Below are positions 10,632-52,538 of a stretch of DNA of 64,000 nt, one piece after another (the stretch's first letter is position 1; every line of letters starts with the position of its first letter). A model generated the notes under the pieces. The model did not search any database. It was not told the origin of the DNA and saw only the letters and a list, made by a program, of their open reading frames with translations. Origin of the DNA: Podarcis melisellensis. Taxonomy: Eukaryota. The translations under genes and the position numbers were made by a program. The stretch lies in NCBI GenBank assembly GCA_964234715.1, contig OZ174275.1; one strand, written 5' to 3'.

Positions 10632-10898
10632 GTGCTGTTATTGAGTTTATTAAAGAACTGGAAGACATTGAAGTCCCAGAAACCTTCTCGGGGGAACTGG
10701 AATGCGAGCTTTCGCCTGAAGATGTCGAAGGAAAATGGTATCATAATGAGGTGGAGCTCAAACCCAGTAATAAGTATCTGATAACCTCACGCCGAGGTCG
10801 CCAAATCCTCACAGTTAAGGATGTTGCTAAAGAAGATCAAGGAGAATACAGCTTTGTGGCAGATGGGAAAAAGACCTCCTGTAAACTGAAGATGAAGC
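10632..10898 (+). CDS. TTN: TTN exon 30, Ig I3
   Basis: CAG|GTGCT...AAGC|GTAAGT; 267 nt. Confidence 0.97.
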
Positions 10899-11280
10899 GT
10901 AAGTTGTTCTGCCTTCTAAATACTTGAGAGCAGGAGTGGGAAACCTCCCCCCCCCAGCCCAAAGACCATATCCTATCATGAGTAGCCTTCCATCATGCTA
11001 GTGGTAGGTGGAGCTGGAAGCAGAGGCCAGAAGTGCAGATGGGTGAAACCACAAGTTTAGTTCTTGTCTTTGTGTAGTTGATAACATTCCCATTCAACAA
11101 TGCAGTATTCCAATGGTGTGGTGTGGTGAATATGCGCGCGCATGTGCGCACACACACACACATTATCATTATTATTACTATTACTATTATTTCATTTCTA
11201 TACTACTTTGTATTTTTAAGAAAAAAAACTCAAAGAGTTTTGCATCCTACATTAAAACATCAAATGAATCAATCCAGAAC

Positions 11281-11530: not shown

Positions 11531-11980
11531 ATAACCATGGAACTGCTGCTGTTGCTGCCAATCCTGTCAATGATGGTTCATGGCAGGCAGTGTCTGTGGA
11601 AGTTCAGGCTTAGTGACCTGGGTCTGCACTAAGACAACCAAGATGGTCTCTGGCATCTTCAGCAGCTTCAGCTTTTGTAGCTGGAGTCAGTCTGGTCTCT
11701 GCCCACCCTGGCCACATGGGAAAAGGTCTGTAAAGCAGGGAGCAGGTCCCCCAGGACTCGCAACCAGGATATCCTTGCACAGCTCTCTGTCCAAGCAATC
11801 AAGAGACATTTTCAGAGTTCAAGGACACATTCCTGCCATCAAAGGCAACTGAGGAGCACCCAGAGTAGGGCTACTGACAGGTGCAGCCTGGCTAGGGAAG
11901 AAAGGTTCCCCATCCCTATTTTATTGAAGCTTCTGATCATTGTTTAATAACTTCTTGCTTCTCTTTCGCATTCCATACAG

Positions 11981-12253
11981 CACGGCCTGTCGCTGTCCTT
12001 CAAGGTCTTGCTGACCAGAAAGTCTGCGAGGGCGACATTGTGCAACTTGAAGTGAAACTCTCCCAAGAAAACGTTGAAGGCGTCTGGATGAAGGATGGTG
12101 TCGAGATTCAACCAAGCGACCGTGTCCACATTGTAGTAGATAAGCAGTCACATATGTTGCTGGTGGAAGATGTCACAAAGGAAGACAGCGGAGCATACTC
12201 ATTCAACATCCCTAGCCTGCTCCTCTCAACCACTGGCCGTGTCACAGTCTATA
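11981..12253 (+). CDS. TTN: TTN exon 31, Ig I4
   Basis: CAG|CACGG...TATA|GTAAGT; 273 nt. Confidence 0.97.
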
Positions 12254-26799: not shown

Positions 26800-26988
26800 A
26801 CCTCAAAGTAGCTTGGTATAGCAAAGACAAAGAGATCAAGCCATCCCGCTTCTTTAGGATGACTCAGTTTGAAGACACTTTCCAGCTTGAGATTGCAGAA
26901 GCATACCCAGAGGATGAAGGAATTTACACCTTTGTCGCAGGCAATTCTGTTGGCCAGGTGTCAAGTACGGCTGCACTGAAGCTGGAAG
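26800..26988 (+). CDS. TTN: TTN exon 44, Ig I15 C-terminal part
   Basis: CAG|ACCTC...GAAG|GTACAG; 189 nt; LKVAWYSKDKEIKPSRFFRMTQFED. Confidence 0.96.
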
Positions 26989-28366: not shown

Positions 28367-28738
28367 GCTTTAAGGTTGAAGAAGTTACCTCACATTCCCA
28401 AAGGCATGTTTCTTCATCTTTCTCCATTAAGAAGGACCCCGTTGCCCAAAGGCCCAACTTTATCCAGCCCATCTCAAGCTGCAGCGTATGCAGCGGGGAA
28501 ACAGTCAGATTCCAAGCCAGGGTTTCCGCCATGCCGAAACCAGAAATCCTCTGGTTTCATAATCAACAGCTAATGTTGCCAACCAAAGGCGTAGTTTTCC
28601 ATTTTGATGAGTCGACAGGCACAGCCACATTGATAATAGTAGATGCTTTCTCAGAAAATGCCGGGCAGTACGCTTGCAAAGCCAGAAATAGTGCTGGAGA
28701 TGCAACTTGCATGGCTACACTTACAGTGACTGCTGAAG
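28367..28738 (+). CDS. TTN: TTN exon 45, novex-1 (alternative; Ig I16)
   Basis: CAG|GCTTT...GAAG|GTAAAG; 372 nt, symmetric phase 1; LMLPTKGVVFHFDESTG. Confidence 0.92.
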
Positions 28739-29408: not shown

Positions 29409-29987
29409 TGCAAGCCTTAGATAGGCTAAGTTCTGGGAAAGATGTAAAAGAGTCTATCCAGGCAAAATCAGAAGTGCATATTGCTTCCCCCTTTGCAAAG
29501 AAGGAAACTCAAGTGTATGTAAAAGAAATTAAGTCCAAGCAGGAGGCGTCACGGGAAATGGTTGTGCAGGCTTTTGAACACCATTCTGGAACTTCTACTG
29601 TGAAAGCTGAGATTGGGAAGGAAGGAGAAAGCTTCAGTGCCACAGCCATTACTCAGAAGTCAGAAAGCACCACGGTATCTGCAACCTCCATTCAAGTGCT
29701 GAGAGAGGCGCCCCCAAAGATTCTTCTGAAACTTCATGATCTCACTGTGAGATGCGGTGACACCGCTCAGTTTATGTGCGCTTTGGAAAGCGAAAACTTC
29801 TCGGAGGTTTTGTGGTCCCACGAGGGAGAAACGTTACAGGAATCTGAACGAATAAGGCTGTCACAAAATGGAAGCGTTCTCTTCCTCACTATAAGCAATG
29901 TCCAACTTTTAGATCAAGGACTGTACAGCTGTACTGTTCGTAATGACTATGGAGAAGTAACAACAACTGCTATACTAACCGTAGAAG
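29409..29987 (+). CDS. TTN: TTN exon 46, novex-2 (alternative; Ig I17)
   Basis: CAG|TGCAAG...GAAG|GTGGTT; 579 nt; VQALDRLSSGKDVKES...PPKILLKLHDLTVRCGD. Confidence 0.92.
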
Positions 29988-31177
29988 GTGGTTATCTGAT
30001 TTTTAACATTATGTGATGTTACTTCATTTCATCCTCATCATCACTGCCTATAGCTCCTGTGCTAGTATTTAATTTAGAATTACAGTTTTGAGTTCCATTT
30101 CCCCCAACCCTCTACATTTCGGGCTCTATTCATAAAGTAACCACATGCACAGGTACTCTGTGTAATTTGCTAGTAAAGTAGGAACCATACCTTCCCCTGG
30201 CAAGTTACAGAGGTATCGGGTTCATCTCCAAAAGCAAGGACTAGTCAATTTGCAGTGAAATACTGAAGCAATTTGGAAGTTTCCTATAGGATCAAAGAGA
30301 AGTACAAGAAGTTGTTTACAATTATTTCTCCTTTACTGGCTGTTAATTTTTGTGAAAGCTTTTTTAAAAAAAACAACAACAGCTATGTAGTCTAACTTTT
30401 AATTTAGGCTATTCTAGTTTACAATGGGTTTTATGCAGATATTGACTGCCATTAACAGAACCATTCTCTGAATGCCCTTTTCCACCCATACCAGTTTTCT
30501 TTTAAAATTGGAATTTTGCATCTTTTTTTCATTCTTTTATTGACCACAACAATTTGTTACGGTTAAGGCAAAGAAACTTCCACATGTCATGTGCCTTGCT
30601 TTTCCTTATCCGACACCAGATGATGAAGGTGCCACAAATGTTTTTACCTATAGTCCTCTCTTGTGTTTAAGCAATGAAGACTAAGAATTGACTTTTGGTT
30701 TTCTTCTCATGGCATGGAAATGGCTGCACGATTAGCACACAGAAGAGTAGGAACAACAACTTGAACCCCAAACAGTGCCAAATATCCTGCTTTTACAAAC
30801 TGGTGGATTTCCTGACTTTTCTACACATCACTGAAAAGCATTGCGGCTGCAGCTGCCTTCTAGGCTATGCAGAAGAAGCTAAAACTGAAGATGTCCTTGT
30901 AAAAATTACTGTGGGCCAATCCTATTTCCTCTGATGTCAGTGACGCAAATCCTGTGGATCTAATTGCACCTTCTATTTAACCTGGCATGAATAGAGCCCT
31001 TAAATGTGGAACAGGATAGTATAAAAGACTGAAAATTCAATTGTTTTTTGCACTAACACGCTGAACATTCCTTTTACCATACTAATGGCTTTTATATACA
31101 TATATAATTGCTGAGTATAGATTTTTTTTTTTTTGCTGCAAAACATCTAATCTTATCCTAACTTTATTCTTGCCTAG

Positions 31178-31699
31178 CTAAAGAAGCACAAGCCAGAACA
31201 GTAACAAAAATTACCCTTGAATCAGATACTAAAAGCATTAAAACAAGCAAAGAGTCTCAGATTAAAACAGCCTATGAATATAAACAAGAGTCTTCCACGG
31301 AAACGACGAGCGTGACAATATCTACAGCTCAAAAAGCACAAGAAGCTGAGAAACTGAGGATCAGAGACTACTACCCTGATGTTGTGCCGTGCGAAGACAT
31401 CGCCGAAACTGGTGCCACAGTACCAGTCTTCCTTGAAACTCTGCCCCCAGAAAGCTTTGTCAAAGAAGGAGATAATGTCTCGCTGTTCTGTGTAATCAAG
31501 GGGTTCCCTACACCTTGTGTCATCTGGCTGTATAACCAGCTAATAGTTGAGGATTCCGCATTGTGCTCTTTGAGGCACGATGGCCCACTGTGCAGTTTAA
31601 ACTTACTGAAAGTTAAGGAGAATCAGAGGGGTATATACAAGTGCAGAATAGTTAATTCTGCGGGACAAGCCGAGTGCAGCACACATCTGAGAGTGACAG
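31178..31699 (+). CDS. TTN: Additional novex-type alternative exon (unique spacer plus one Ig domain)
   Basis: CTAAC branch point, pyrimidine tract, TAG|CTAAAG...GACAG|GTTGGC; 522 nt, phase 1/1, no stop; Ig motifs PVF..L, EGDNVSLFC, W, GIYKC, NSAG. Confidence 0.85.
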
Positions 31700-31974
31700 G
31701 TTGGCAACTGCATGTTCCTTCCATATACTCCTCTTGCGTACCGTCGTTGAAACCTGTTCAATCCACAGTCCGTGATATAATGAAGCGGCTGTGGATTGTT
31801 GAATATTTTCCTCATGGTGTTAAAGGCATGTTAAAGGCATGTTGAATTAGAAAAAGAAAAAGAGGGAGAGGGTGGGGAGAGGAAAAGGCTCCTTTAAAAT
31901 GCTCTGGGGGAAAATCCCCAATACTTTAGCATCCTCCCACTATTTGTTTTCAACTTATCAGGCACTTCCTGGCA

Positions 31975-32122: not shown

Positions 32123-32179
32123 CCCTGGAAAGAGTTCTGCAGGAGAAGATAGAACAACAGATTGAAATGGAAGTGAAAG
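32123..32179 (+). CDS. TTN: TTN exon 47 (57-nt linker)
   Basis: CAG|CCCTG...AAAG|GTACAG; LERVLQEKIEQQIEMEVK. Confidence 0.95.
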
Positions 32180-33314
32180 GTACAGTCGCACACAAACGTT
32201 TATATGGAAAGGAAGGTTTAGCATAAAAAAAACCCCCAGTAACCCCTTTGAAAAGCTGATACGTATGACCAAGAAAGCAAAACATATTCTGAAGCATATC
32301 TGAATATGCCGCATGTTTTGTTTTAATATGCTCAGGATAACCTGCATTATTACAAAAAGGATACAAGTTTTAAAGTCCATTTAAAACTTTTCATTTTCAC
32401 AGAGTTGCCCGTCTTTACTTTCACGTCGTGCTATGCAGCTGGTTGCAAAAGCTTTTCTTTCGTATACCTTCTTGTAATGCATGGGACAATTTTAGACTGA
32501 ATTGCTTCGGATGGTTTCAGAACACATTAGTCCTCTAACATGAATGAGTTGGTCAAAAACCATGGGCTGGCATCTGTTTAAGATGCAACACTTTGCAAGA
32601 TGGGAAAGGGGCCTGTTTCCATTTGTTGCCCTCCCATTTCATGAACATGATATTAATTCTCCTTTATGGAAATTCTTACACTGGCTTGCAGATAGCATAG
32701 TTGGGCCATGTTGCTTGCTTTCTTTCCTTTTTTCTTTTTTTGCATAACATTGTGAAGTTAGCAGCTGTATTAGTTCGAATAAACGCCTTCTCATTTTGTT
32801 TTAGCAAATTACTTACAGTTGACTTTTTTTTTCATATCTTTGAAAAATATCTTTTCTATTGTTTGGCCATTTTAACCCACAATCAAAGGGATCAGAAAGG
32901 GCGTTTATTCTACTGTCTGCAAGTCAGGTAAGATTCCCCTCCCCTTCTTTGCAAAGAAGAAATGCAAAAAAAAAAATACAAAAAAATAAAAAGCTTTTCA
33001 GGCAGTAAAACATGCACCCACAGGAACATGTCATTTTGAGATTCATTTTGCTTGTTGATGAAGAAATTTCCGCAGTTGGAAGAAAGAACCGACAGCGAAC
33101 GATTTTCGTGTCAGAATCTTTAAAACAGAGCAAGGCGTTGCGTTTATTCGAACAAATATGGTGAGTGAATTTTTTTTTAATGGATTTGTGATGAATCTGT
33201 TGCATGCTCATTATTTAATTTCATTTATAGCTATTTCATTTCTTTTCAATTTTTTTCCCAACTGTGGGATGGAAAGGACGGAGTACGCTGTAATGTAATG
33301 GTATTCTTTTGCAG

Positions 33315-47584: not shown

Positions 47585-47779
47585 TATAAACTGAATCCTA
47601 AAATAATGTCCACCCTTTGATTCAAGGTATATTTTAAAATATATGAATGTTTTAATCATCTTGCAGCATTACGAAGTGTTGTCCTAACATGATAATTGAT
47701 TGATAGTATCTGGTAGATACAAGATGAATTTTTCAAGAAAGCATTTTAGTAAAATGTAAATAATTTTTTTCCCATACAG

Positions 47780-50700
47780 AGATTTCTAGCTCTATTATTG
47801 TGTCTTCTGAGGAAGAAAGAACTGAGAGTTACACCAGCGGCCTACAATTATGTGATAGAGATAAAACACTTGAACTCATGCCTGAAGATCCAGTTTATTC
47901 TAGCAGTTTAGAGGTGAAAAGGGAGAAGAGCAATGTCCCAACCTTCCTCAAGCATGTGTCAAATGTTGAAATAAGTTTAGGAGATTTAGCTAGACTTTCT
48001 GTTGTAGTTACTGGGGATCCAAAACCACAGATACAATGGTATTTCAATAGTGTTAAGCTGACATCATCTGCAGACTATAAGTTTGTGTTTGATGATAAAA
48101 ACTATAGCCTCATTATTCTCTCCACAAAATTTGACCATGAAGGGGAATATACTTGCATTGCTAGTAATATCCATGGAGAGACAGCCTGCTCTGCTTATCT
48201 GAAGGTCAATCCTAAGGGAGATGAAAGGGAACTGGAGGCAGAATTCACTGCAGAGAAGACAGGAAGTCCTCGACCTCCATGTTTTGTTAGGAAGCTAGAC
48301 CCTGTTCAGTGTGCACAAGGTGCTCCTGCTGTGTTTGAGTACAAAGTGGCTGGGGATCCACCTCCAGAGATTCAGTGGTTTAGGGGAAACAACCAGATTT
48401 TCTCCTGTGCACGATACACTATCATTCATAATCGAGATGGTTCTGGGTCACTAATGGTGAATAACTGCCAGGGGGCCGATGGTGGCTTATACATCTGTAA
48501 GGGAATCAACCTCATAGGTGAAGCCTCTAGCAGTGCAGAACTTCTTGTTCTCTTAGACATGCCTGGGGAGGCTCCATATAAGGAAAAGAAGAGTAAACAG
48601 AAAACACGCACCAAGTCATATAAAGAAACTGTAAGTGACGAGGCTACTGTCTCACGGATATATGCCGTTAAACTGCCTGGTGATGATAGGCACGATGGGC
48701 AGCATGTGATGTATACAATTGGAACTGAAGATAGGCATTCACTACATAGTGAAGAGGTAGATGTTTTGCAGGTGGCTTCCTACTCAACAGCTACTATACA
48801 GCAGGAAGCCCTTCTGACCCAACAAGTAGCCTTGCTTGAGTCTCAGAAAGTTGGAGAAATTGCAGATCCATCTTCTCAGGCCAATGAAAAAGTGGCTTCT
48901 TCAGCTTTTACTACAGGTGAGGTGAAGGAGCACCCCGGTTTCCTAGAACAACACTCTGAACCAATTCAAAGCCCACCAATAGTCGAATTGCCGGGTTCCT
49001 GGTGCCACCAAGTTTCTGATCTCTGTTTACCTGTTGTGGAGGAAATAAACCAAGAAGACAAAGAAAAGGGGCTGCAAACCAAGCTTCCAGAAATGGTCAG
49101 GCCAACGTCAGCCATAGAGCAAACATCTCAGTTTGCCTCCATTCTATCTGAGGAGAAATATGTGGTAAGCCCTGGTGAGTCTGTTGTATTCTCAGTCCCA
49201 GGAGCTGAGGAAGTTATTGAAACCAGTGAGCCTAAACATGCAGTATGTGTTCCTAGAATCGAGGGCATCCAAGAATTGTCCAAGGAAAGTTCTTTGGCAG
49301 ACCACACACACAAGTGGGAGAATATCAGACCAGCTAAAGAACGAGGCAGCTTTTTCCAGTCTGCTGTAGCAGCAGAACAATGCAAAATAAGTGAAGCTCA
49401 TGCTGAGGCAATCGATTATGCTGATTCACCTGCAGAAGTTAGTCATACCCAAGAATCATCCAATGTATTACATGTGGCTACGATTGCCTCTGAACAGATG
49501 TTCCCCAAAGAGTCCGCCTTTGATGCAACCATTGCAGAGCAGCAGAAGGGCTCCCTGGAACAGGACAGGCTCGTCCAAACAGCTCTGGTTGCTGAAGAAA
49601 AGCAGCAGCTCTCTGATGAACACACTGAGGACCTTCCCAGGTTAGACTGCACGGTGGTAGCAGAAATCCAAAGAGAGGGTGAAAAGCCACTGCATTTGCC
49701 TGTTGTACATGGACAAGGCTCGCTTCCTAGAGAAGAGCATTTTAGTTCTGAGGTGCCCCTGGAAGATGAGGCACTGTCTAGGAAAAGCCCATGTTTGCTA
49801 CACTGCTTAGTAACAGAAGAACAAGTCTCCACGTCTTGTGAAGATGCTAAGCAGTTTCCTCCTCTGGCAGAGGCAGTTAGCATTCAGGTCACCCAGGAGC
49901 CCATTTCTGTGTTGCATCTCCAAACGAGCCAAACTGAGCTCGTTTGGAAGGAAGGCATCTTGGCTGTACAAGAACCCGAACCCCAAAATGCTTTGCAGAA
50001 AGCTGAAATAATGCTCAAACGTGCTGTGGCATCTGAGGAAAAAAACCAGATAGCTGCCGAGGCCCTAGAGGCTTTTCAGAGTGGCCTTGCTGGAGAATAC
50101 CCTGTGGCTATAGCAGAGCCTCAGCTTCGTAAGTGTCTGACCACTGTGGCTGAGAAGATGCTTCTGCCCAAAGAGGAAATCCTCCCCAAAGCAGGAAAAG
50201 AGCAGAAAGCTACCCTGAGGAAGGAAGACTTTCAACCAGTGATGCAGGTATCTGATGTGACTGAAGAGAGGGTCTTGGATGTAGGACATGCTGAGCCATT
50301 TGAGGCTGTTCAGCCCATGAGTTGTGAGGTGGTGTCTGAGCCCAGGTTGCCTTCAGAATCCACCTGCGTTGAGGATCAAGGTGTTCCGATAGAGAGCATC
50401 GATCTCTTGGAAGCCACAGAGCAAGAATTTGCAGCCCGCATCCAAGAAGGTCAGTCAGTCAGGCTCCCATTGTTATTGGAGGAAAAACAGACATTAAAGG
50501 AAGAGCACTTGGACAAGATCTCAAGGCCAGATGCTGAGAACGCAACAGCCCAAAAGCAACTGGGGCTGCTTATGGATGTGCCTGAAACATGGGAAAACAA
50601 AGTGCTTCGGAAAGAAGAAGAACTTGCAGCTGAGACTCCCGTATGTTGTAGCTTAGATATGAAGGCTCAGATCAGAAAGGCCCTGAAAGTAGCTCTGACA

Positions 50701-51640
50701 AATGAACAGCACTTATTTCCATTGGATGCTTTCGATGATATTGAGAGCGTTCAATTAAAGACTGTAACAGTGATCAAAGAACCTCAACATGCAACATGCA
50801 CTTGCCTTGTAATCTTGGAAAGTTCCAATACTGCAGAAATAACTCTCTCTCTAGATGGAATATATTCTCAGACAGCTGATTTCAAAAGTGAATTGCAAGC
50901 TGCTGTTCACTCCATTATTTATGACGAGAAACATGTTCTGACAGCAGAGGAACCCAGTGCCATAGCAGAACCTAAACACCACAAGTTGCTTGCTTCTTGT
51001 TCACCTCCCAAACTAATGCAGTCTGCTACTGTAACTGAGACACCTGTTCAGCAACAATCTGTCAGTAATATTATTGGTTCACCTGAGCTACATCATGCTT
51101 ACCTGAGTACTGAATCAGAAATACAGGAGGAGCAACTTGTGTCTATTCAAGAAGTCCAAACTATTGCTCTTAGTGAGCACATTAAAGATGTAGGTACAAC
51201 CACACTCACCCTTGATATTCCTGTAGCAGCAGCCCCAGTTGAGAGGTTAATAGATGCTCTAAAAGTGAAAGAGAGAAAGGAAGAACTTTTTGAGGAAAAT
51301 GAAGAGGAGGCACATGTAGTTAAGGCTAGCAAACGAGAAGACAGTCTAGCGAGCAGGGATTGTCCCATCATGCGCCAAAGTTTTATAGACACTGTTGTTG
51401 AAGAAGGTGACAGCGTAAGTCTTACTTCCATTATAGAAAATGTTAAAGTGGTGAATTGGTATTTTGGGGATAAGCTGGTATCTTCAGAAAATGAGTTCAA
51501 GTGCTTGCAGGACCATGACACATACACACTAGTAATCAACCAAGCATTCAAGGAAGTGCATCAAGGAGAGTACACCTGTGAGGCTCTGAATGAAGGTGGA
51601 AAAACAACAGCAACAGCGAAACTCACAGTTGTAAAAAGAG
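47780..51640 (+). CDS. TTN: TTN exon 49, cardiac N2B element (Ig I24, I25, unique sequence, I26)
   Basis: CAG|AGATT...AAGAG|GTTGGA; 3861 nt phase 1/1; KLTSSADYKFVFD, RIQEGQSVRLPLLLEEKQ, ends TAKLTVVKR. Confidence 0.96.
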
Positions 51641-52538
51641 GTTGGAATATGGGGATAAAATATTGCTTTCCTATTTTCACTCATTTGCTAACTGAATAGA
51701 ACACACATATACATATTTGTATCTCTAGTAGCATTTTGGATACAGATATAAGAAGTATATAAACTTCAGCTGTGCACCACCAAACTAATCACAGATCCTC
51801 CACTTTTTGTTTCCTCTTTAGAACTTTTATTTCTTTAAATATATTTCTTATTCACACCTTTTATTTGCATTTTGCACTTTTTGGTACTGAAACAAAATTA
51901 AATTTTGTTTCATGAATGATGATTGTTAAATAAACTATTTGTAATGTCGGATTTTTTAAAAAGAGTGCATGTCTTAGGAGCACTTTCATCCCCATATCCA
52001 CAGAGCAACTTGGTTCACTTTTCCTTTTCATTGCTACAATAAAGATGCAATCCTGAACACGCTTACTAGGGAGGAAGCCCCACTGAGCACAGTGAGACTG
52101 GCTTCCAAGTAGACGTGCCAAGAGATTGTCCAGCACGTTGTAGAAGTCATTGCACCATTCTAGCATAATGTCACACATTTCATGTTGAAAATGTTCTGGT
52201 ACAACCTGGTATAATTTCATATATCATGTTGTTTGCATGCCTTTAGTAGTAAGTAGCACATCAGAGTATCTTCAGAGTTCCATTATGCACTGCAATGTAG
52301 GTAGCCCTCTGGTAGACTGAGCACTGCTTTTGGTTTGCTTTCACCTCTGACAACCATTTTTCTTTACAGCCACTTTCCTTGGGTAGCTCATGAAACCACA
52401 CATCTCATTTCTGTTGGTCACTTTATTAACAGTGTTTTGGAATGTACACTTATAAGCACCATACATGCTATTAGTATTACAATATCCACATAAACATGGG
52501 TGGTTGTAACCACATTATTCTTTGACTTTTAACTTCAG

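Follow-up and report, generated by a model that had tools for sequence, protein, structure and literature searches.

A candidate fourth novex-type exon between novex-2 and exon 47 of vertebrate titin

The closest described counterparts of the exon reported here are the optional novex exons of the titin gene (TTN). Novex-1 and novex-2 each join unique sequence to one I-set immunoglobulin (Ig) domain in an exon of phase 1/1, the unique spacer being long in novex-2, and novex-1 is intact in mammals (PMC5852582). Novex-3 (human exon 48) is an 8-kb exon that carries its own stop and ends the protein, and exons 47 and 48 are separated by exon 48', which is 85 to 100 nt long and shifts the frame (Chen et al. 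2018; PMC5852582). The novex variants were reported to be outside RBM20 control, and RT-PCR across exons 46 to 49 in chicken heart yielded the ordinary 46-47-49 product, with no extra exon mentioned (PMC5852582). A second class for comparison consists of the RBFOX-activated cassette exons of muscle and heart, which combine a weak donor with deeply conserved (U)GCAUG motifs in the first 300 nt downstream; GCAUG downstream of an exon enhances its inclusion via Fox/RBFOX proteins (Jin et al. 2003, as cited in PMC4541041).

A fourth novex exon is named in neither PMC5852582 nor PMC12241362. Chen et al. 2018, who covered this interval in eight species including a lizard, and the 2025 elephant-shark connectin paper name only novex I to III. 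Our literature search for a "novex-4" titin exon or for a description of chicken titin novex exons returned neither; an older chicken description may exist.

We analyzed a 64,000-nt stretch of Podarcis melisellensis DNA (contig OZ174275.1 of assembly GCA_964234715.1), referred to here as the window, which covers the TTN locus with the plus strand as coding strand and contains no runs of N. The first-pass annotation had placed an additional exon between novex-2 and exon 47, and the surrounding exons (exon 44, novex-1, novex-2, exon 47, novex-3, and N2B) were mapped (Table 1); the sizes of exon 44, novex-1, and exon 47 (189, 372, and 57 nt) are those of lizard exons 44, 45, and 47 listed in Chen et al. 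2018 (PMC5852582). The additional exon (the candidate exon) had been described as a stop-free stretch of phase 1/1 with a CTAAC branch point, a pyrimidine tract, and AG/GT splice sites, every one of which is present. Just one of its frames is open, and the exon divides into 2 bases, 173 codons starting at position 31180, and 1 base. Exon 44, novex-1, novex-2, the candidate exon, and exon 47 are all of phase 1/1, so that the reading frame is kept whether the candidate exon is preceded by exon 44, by novex-1, or by novex-2, and likewise when it is followed by exon 47. An alanine codon is formed at each junction, split as G/CT between novex-2 and the candidate exon and as G/CC between the candidate exon and exon 47.

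Table 1. Exons and splicing elements in the window, and the candidate exon or its remnant at other loci (L numbers are our own locus labels)
Feature	Locus	Coordinates	Strand	Length and remarks
Exon 44	Window	26800-26988	+	189 nt
Novex-1 exon (human exon 45)	Window	28367-28738	+	372 nt; alternative upstream partner of the candidate exon
Novex-2 exon (human exon 46)	Window	29409-29987	+	579 nt; upstream partner in most gene models
3' splice region	Window	31138-31177	+	Conserved AAAACATCTAA block, CTAAC at 31158-31162, pyrimidine tract, AG at 31176-31177
Candidate exon	Window	31178-31699	+	522 nt, between novex-2 and exon 47
5' part of candidate exon	Window	31178-31413	+	~78-residue T/S/K/E-rich spacer; from translation and alignments
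3' part of candidate exon	Window	31414-31699	+	Complete I-set immunoglobulin domain
5' splice site GTTGGC and invariant block	Window	31700-31725	+	GT at 31700-31701; TGCATG at 31709-31714
Conserved intronic island	Window	31798-31857	+	Tandem pair AGGCATG..AAGGCATG, GCATG at 31826 and 31837
Fourth GCATG	Window	31972	+	+273
Exon 47	Window	32123-32179	+	57 nt; predicted downstream partner of the candidate exon
Novex-3 open frame	Window	from 33299	+	
N2B exon open frame	Window	47764-51696	+	
Candidate exon	L004 (lizard-like)			522 nt
Candidate exon	L005 (lizard-like)			525 nt
Candidate exon	L006 (groups with birds; archosaur- or turtle-like)			525 nt
Candidate exon	L001 and L011 (birds)			519 nt
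Candidate exon	L007 and L017 (frogs)			522 nt
Candidate exon	L012 (teleost-like, from a metagenome)			507 nt
Candidate exon	L018 (shark)			516 nt
Mammalian remnant	L014 (dingo)	10703-11193		
Mammalian remnant	L015 (bilby)	11538-12042		

The encoded peptide has the two-part architecture that the first-pass annotation had likened to novex-1 and novex-2, namely, unique T/S/K/E-rich sequence of about 80 residues followed by a full I-set Ig domain, and both parts were borne out by translation and by Pfam. The spacer, which includes the conserved start KEAQA..VTKITLESDTKSIKT and the linker DYYPDVVPCEDI, matched no family, and an AlphaFold model of the whole exon built with 16 orthologs was poor (mean pLDDT of 45) and uninformative on the spacer. 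The second half matches Pfam I-set (PF07679) at residues 87 to 172, over profile positions 5 to 90 of 90, with an E value of 3.5e-17 and a score of 62.7 bits against a gathering cutoff of 23.7; the best match among PDB sequences is titin I65-I70 (3b43; E value of 7e-30). When modeled alone with AlphaFold, using an alignment of orthologs and titin paralogs, the Ig domain folds well (pLDDT of 97.5), and a Foldseek comparison places it close to titin I21 (8ovu_A; TM score of 0.96, rmsd of 0.9 Å). Six cysteines had been counted, and six do lie in the Ig domain, but the exon total is seven, the additional one being in the linker just before the domain; conservation throughout the vertebrates is limited to four, at residues 104, 138, 155, and 166. 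The first-pass annotation had raised the possibility of a redox-sensitive Ig domain; Ig domains rich in cysteine occur commonly in the I-band part of titin.

Relatives of the exon were found by a word search with the peptide, and DNA was taken for ten kinds of locus. The search returned genomic open reading frames (ORFs) together with database fragments of tortoise, side-necked turtle, budgerigar, and reedfish. In other vertebrates the exon occupies the same TTN position, and it is intact in two other lizards. The orthologs align from end to end over 507 to 525 nt and contain no stops, and every length is a multiple of three. At loci where the neighbors are visible, the candidate exon comes after novex-2 and before novex-3; the order novex-1, novex-2, candidate exon, novex-3 is complete in L001, L004, and L011 and partial in the shorter loci L006 and L018. 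Cluster look-ups identified L001 as a chicken match, L017 as the assembly of the frog Staurois parvus, with which L007 also clusters, and L018 as the sevengill shark Heptranchias perlo. Additional protein models with the exon come from spotted gar, frogfish, crane, wagtail, potoo, penguins, kittiwake, hummingbird, bustard, and eagle; turtle protein models carry it too, and the Ig part is present in a reedfish model.

The exon is thus intact in shark, gar, teleost-like fish, ranid frogs, an archosaur or turtle, and birds, which contradicts the suggestion that it was gained in sauropsids; as judged from these sequences, it arose before sharks and bony vertebrates diverged. The orthologous peptides were 85, 80, 78, 72, 73, 57, and 46% identical to that of the window in the order of the seven-ortholog alignment, and the shark peptide was ~50% identical. 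Novex-2 was less conserved at the same loci (74, 64, 60, and 57%), and novex-1 was similarly conserved (85, 77, and 77%); between lizard and chicken, the identities were 72% for the candidate exon, 57% for novex-2, and 77% for novex-1.

Some fish sequences depart from this pattern. In the reedfish model P0013 (Erpetoichthys calabaricus, Ensembl), an upstream Ig exon is joined to the Ig part of the candidate exon without the spacer, and 20 extra residues lie between the end of the candidate exon and exon 47-like sequence; these could reflect an alternative downstream donor or a model error. Among teleost-like models, the Ig half looks intact in P0017, P0024, and P0030 and degenerate in P0025, P0028 (the frogfish Antennarius striatus), P0029, and P0031, where the conserved B-strand cysteine is replaced; P0028 and P0029 have also lost the F-strand Y-x-C motif. 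This degeneration of the Ig half in some teleosts may represent independent decay.

The pattern of substitution points to coding constraint. When seven tetrapods were aligned over 1.1 kb, they matched the window at 72 to 93% identity over nearly all of the exon, with a single dip to 59% inside the spacer, and at ~50% in the outer flanks. The dN/dS ratio (Nei-Gojobori), a check proposed in the first-pass annotation, was 0.21 to 0.33 for the whole exon, 0.13 to 0.31 for the Ig part, and 0.23 to 0.68 for the spacer, and the overall values indicate purifying selection. In a tree of the candidate Ig domains and 29 other titin Ig domains of the window, all candidate orthologs formed one clade whose internal order is that of the species tree, with the shark outside and then the ray-finned fish and the tetrapods, and this clade did not adjoin the Ig domain of novex-1 or novex-2. 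The agreement with the species tree and the absence of a sister relationship to novex-1 and novex-2 indicate an old, vertically inherited exon rather than a recent copy. These comparisons support the view that the candidate exon is a selectively maintained fourth exon distinct from novex-1, -2, and -3, and we regard it as very likely that positions 31178 to 31699 represent a conserved coding exon, the fourth of the novex type.

Identity with a described exon was considered and rejected in each case. The candidate exon co-occurs with novex-1, -2, and -3 and is 25 to 30% identical to their Ig domains. Novex-2 shares with it the gene region, the long unique spacer, the single I-set Ig domain, and the phase, and is the optional exon directly upstream, yet the two are different exons, both being present next to each other in shark, teleost-like fish, lizards, birds, and mammals, and their Ig domains are only ~25 to 28% identical and not sisters in the tree. 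Novex-1 resembles it in architecture, phase, and degree of conservation but has a shorter spacer and an Ig domain ~26 to 28% identical to that of the candidate exon, and, whereas novex-1 is intact in mammals, the Ig half of the candidate exon is broken in dingo and bilby. A recent duplication of novex-1 or novex-2 is ruled out by the Ig identities of 25 to 28% together with the tree. Novex-3 and exon 48' are likewise optional exons in the same interval; however, the 522-nt candidate exon lies upstream of exon 47 and keeps the frame, which distinguishes it from the much larger, stop-carrying novex-3, and position and size rule out exon 48'.

The splice signals of the candidate exon are themselves deeply conserved. 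The acceptor region has a mean identity of 82 to 94% to six other tetrapods, compared with ~50% further upstream, and the highest identities among seven tetrapods are 94%, over the 20 nt preceding the exon, and 99%, at positions 31698 to 31717, both above the level of the exon itself. Branch point, pyrimidine tract, and AG are nearly identical in lizards, birds, the teleost-like locus, dingo, and bilby, the last three of which share the CCTAAC...TTATTCT...AG layout; the branch spot reads CCTAAT in the sevengill shark and ATAAAT in frogs. The donor is CAG/GTTGGC in almost every species, and GTTGGCA with GCATG at +11 is present at every locus from shark to lizard. The donor is weak, matching 6 of 9 positions of the general consensus and having an unusual T at +3. 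The block directly 3' of it, GTTGGCAACTGCATG, is invariant and contains TGCATG at +10.

Further GCATG motifs follow. Within ~300 nt of the donor, the window has GCATG at +11, +127, +138, and +273, the middle two of which form a tandem pair in an intronic island that is 71 to 84% identical in the seven-tetrapod alignment, versus 17 to 58% on either side. Conservation of the tandem pair, at +116 to +164, extends over lizards, birds, two frog loci, shark, bilby, and dingo; the pair is absent from one short frog contig (L007) and from the teleost-like locus (L012). With 79 GCATG copies in the 64-kb window, the Poisson probability of at least three within 150 nt is about 9e-4, conservation not counted. 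The combination of a weak donor with a downstream GCAUG cluster makes RBFOX-type activation of this donor plausible, the likeness to RBFOX-activated cassette exons being one of motifs; the candidate exon differs from them in that its first motif is only 10 nt from the splice site. A separate stretch just after the novex-2 donor (positions 29981 to 30056) is also conserved, its first 60 to 75 intron nt being 73 to 83% identical to those of birds, the archosaur- or turtle-like locus, and bilby, which suggests another conserved splicing signal.

In mammals, the exon survives in a degenerate form. A profile search with the spacer half retrieved RefSeq models of dingo, other canids, and the greater bilby in which novex-2 is spliced to a homolog of only the first 50 to 70 residues, followed by a stop. 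In the dingo, the 5' part is 72% identical to the window and the last 175 nt are 62% identical, the middle part is reduced in length, and many stops interrupt the Ig frame. In the bilby, the whole exon aligns (63% over 768 nt), and pieces of the Ig domain are recognizable in a frame broken by stops and frameshifts. The acceptor region, the GT at the donor position, the TGCATG at about +11, and the tandem GGCATG pair survive in both species. Both also retain an open frame over the first ~49 codons, in which dingo and bilby are 82% identical, compared with 48% for the upstream intron, with a pN/pS ratio of 0.5. The first-pass suggestion that the exon was lost in mammals therefore holds for the Ig half, which stops, frameshifts, and a deletion have broken in these two species, but not for the acceptor, the first ~50 codons, the donor GT, or the GCAUG motifs. 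On this sequence comparison, therians have lost the domain and seem to have kept the splicing unit, and the remnant in dingo and bilby may still be spliced as a stop-carrying exon.

The candidate exon has already been captured by automatic annotation, under misleading names outside the titin records. In ten gene models (P0019, P0032, P0047, P0053, P0067, P0104, P0106, P0107, P0108, and P0028; from Humboldt penguin, crane, chicken, wagtail, potoo, kittiwake, hummingbird, shark, gar, and frogfish), its first base follows immediately on the last base of novex-2, others join novex-1 to it (two penguin models, P0081, P0083), and the potoo model chains all three novex-type exons. The chicken exon is contained in XP_046777693.1, a misnamed separate RefSeq gene model. 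Models such as crane XP_075611892.1, shark P0107, and tortoise A0A452HGF2 thus agree with our reading in the peptide and in the joining of the acceptor to novex-1 or novex-2, but they are filed as misnamed genes or fragments rather than as titin, RefSeq placing the exon in separate "genes" outside its titin models, and they mostly end by read-through. The exception is a frog model (P0101; CAI9556857.1, Staurois parvus) in which ..HLTVT-A-LEKVLQERIEQQIEFEVK corresponds to the candidate exon joined to the exon 47 homolog; in the frog DNA, the intron of this model extends from the conserved GT to the exon 47 acceptor. Since the RefSeq models other than the frog one ignore the donor and read through to the next stop, the evidence for donor use consists of one frog model and conservation.

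When the lizard peptide, the chicken peptide, or a longer bird model was used as the query of a word search, the matches were genomic read-through ORFs and gene models, and none was a spliced RNA contig. None of the 16 matches of the spacer-half profile search against 1.84 billion representatives was a full-length titin with the exon, although clustering at 50% identity could hide one. Given that only the 46-47-49 product was reported from chicken heart, inclusion may be rare or restricted to particular tissues or stages. The "fourth novex cassette" of the first-pass annotation accordingly stands as far as a conserved coding exon is concerned, on the evidence of open frame, synteny, dN/dS, and splice signals, while the evidence on its cassette use comes from gene models of other species. 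Cassette use is reasonably supported, and for P. melisellensis it is extrapolated from those models.

Two features of the annotation records are worth describing in their own right. In several Ensembl fragments, half of the candidate exon is joined to the novex-3 Ig domain, which looks like an alignment artifact. A series of models from many vertebrates (P0023, P0026, P0028, P0032, P0047, P0053, P0067, P0081, P0095, and P0104 to P0108) treats novex-1, novex-2, and the candidate exon as genes of their own inside TTN, under unrelated names such as myosin light chain kinase-like, myopalladin-like, SPEG-like, twitchin-like, MyBP-H-like, and obscurin-like, and these records look like a systematic annotation error.

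Since almost all models read through the donor, we considered whether the candidate exon might instead be an alternative last coding exon, entered from novex-1 or novex-2, whose weak donor is ignored and whose frame runs to a stop 17 to 50 codons further on, so that it ends in the intron and yields a short truncated titin, in principle comparable to the way in which novex-3 ends the protein. Every RefSeq/Gnomon model in birds, shark, gar, and frogfish does end in this manner, the donor is indeed weak, and truncated novex-2 transcripts with "intron 46 retention" have been reported from chicken, frog, and human heart (PMC5852582); a predictor lacking the downstream junction would, however, also write read-through, and the frog model splices the donor to exon 47. 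The read-through frame is open for 17 to 50 codons in all species seen and is partly alike in birds, turtles, and lizards, but the shark, gar, frog, and bird tails are unrelated beyond GWQLH, and deletions of 4 and 5 nt in the window scramble its tail relative to that of the nearest lizard. No conserved AATAAA or ATTAAA is found within 450 nt downstream. Moreover, no codon position varies within the 25 nt that follow the exon, not even those at which a change would be synonymous, which argues for an RNA signal rather than protein constraint. Because of the missing conserved poly(A) signal, the divergent tails, the deletions in the window, and the behavior of predictors, we rate this explanation lower and regard it as unlikely.

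The RefSeq records could also be taken at face value, as a small independent gene nested in titin that comprises novex-1, novex-2, and the candidate exon under its own promoter. Separate XP records do exist in chicken, crane, wagtail, potoo, penguins, kittiwake, hummingbird, shark, gar, frogfish, dingo, and bilby, but their start codons vary by species, falling inside novex-2, inside novex-1, or in intron read-through, with no conserved first exon; novex-1 and novex-2 are established titin exons (PMC5852582), and all three exons have the phase 1/1 that matches the flanking titin exons. This makes a nested gene highly improbable. It is barely credible, finally, that the candidate exon is an unused pseudo-exon in P. 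melisellensis that only looks intact. The case for its use in this species is drawn from sequence; against a pseudo-exon are the 173 open codons in an AT-rich intron, dN/dS ratios of 0.2 to 0.3 against close and distant relatives, a length that has remained a multiple of three over >400 million years, conserved splice signals, and the mammalian copies, which show what true decay looks like at the same exon.

The best overall explanation, and in our judgment a probable one, is that titin has in the candidate exon a genuine alternative coding exon, which amounts to a fourth exon of the novex type. As such, it would follow exon 44, novex-1, or novex-2 and be joined to exon 47 with the frame unchanged. 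Its inclusion would insert ~78 residues of probably disordered T/S/K/E-rich linker and one I-set Ig domain where the proximal tandem-Ig segment ends, immediately ahead of exon 47 and the N2B element, and would be expected to lengthen the extensible I-band part of titin. Use of the weak CAG/GTTGGC donor would depend on RBFOX-family proteins bound at the GCAUG motifs at +11, ~+130, and ~+140, the downstream arrangement being one known to promote inclusion in muscle and heart.

If a fourth novex-type exon is used in fish, amphibians, reptiles, and birds, these animals would have one more regulated spring element, situated where the proximal Ig segment meets N2B, that comparative work on muscle stiffness has not accounted for. 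The titin exon map and the isoform names derive from human and mouse, where the exon presumably no longer encodes a domain. Work on the control of titin splicing has mostly concerned RBM20, and the exon would provide a clean candidate for control by RBFOX; it may also explain the "MLCK-like," "myopalladin-like," and "SPEG-like" records found inside TTN.

For the mammalian gene, the dog and bilby remnant poses the question of a stop-carrying exon. A tentative reading, which we consider possible but doubtful, is that the acceptor, the weak donor, and the three-motif GCAUG module form a splicing switch >400 million years old, which adds a linker and an Ig domain in most vertebrates; in therians, the Ig domain would have decayed while the switch remained under selection, and inclusion would now mean a stop after novex-2, either truncating titin or exposing the transcript to decay. 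On this reading, the candidate exon may make up part of the "intron 46 retention" products of mammalian heart.

A further stretch of strong conservation lies in the intron between exon 47 and novex-3. At positions 32676 to 33250, ~500 to 600 nt that lack an open frame are 80% identical to the archosaur- or turtle-like locus, 76% to chicken, 73 to 74% to bilby and dingo, 69 to 70% to frogs, and 68% (over 528 nt) to a shark. Exon 48' (85 to 100 nt) and what Chen et al. 2018 call the "conserved region" probably fall within this stretch, which is far longer than exon 48' itself.
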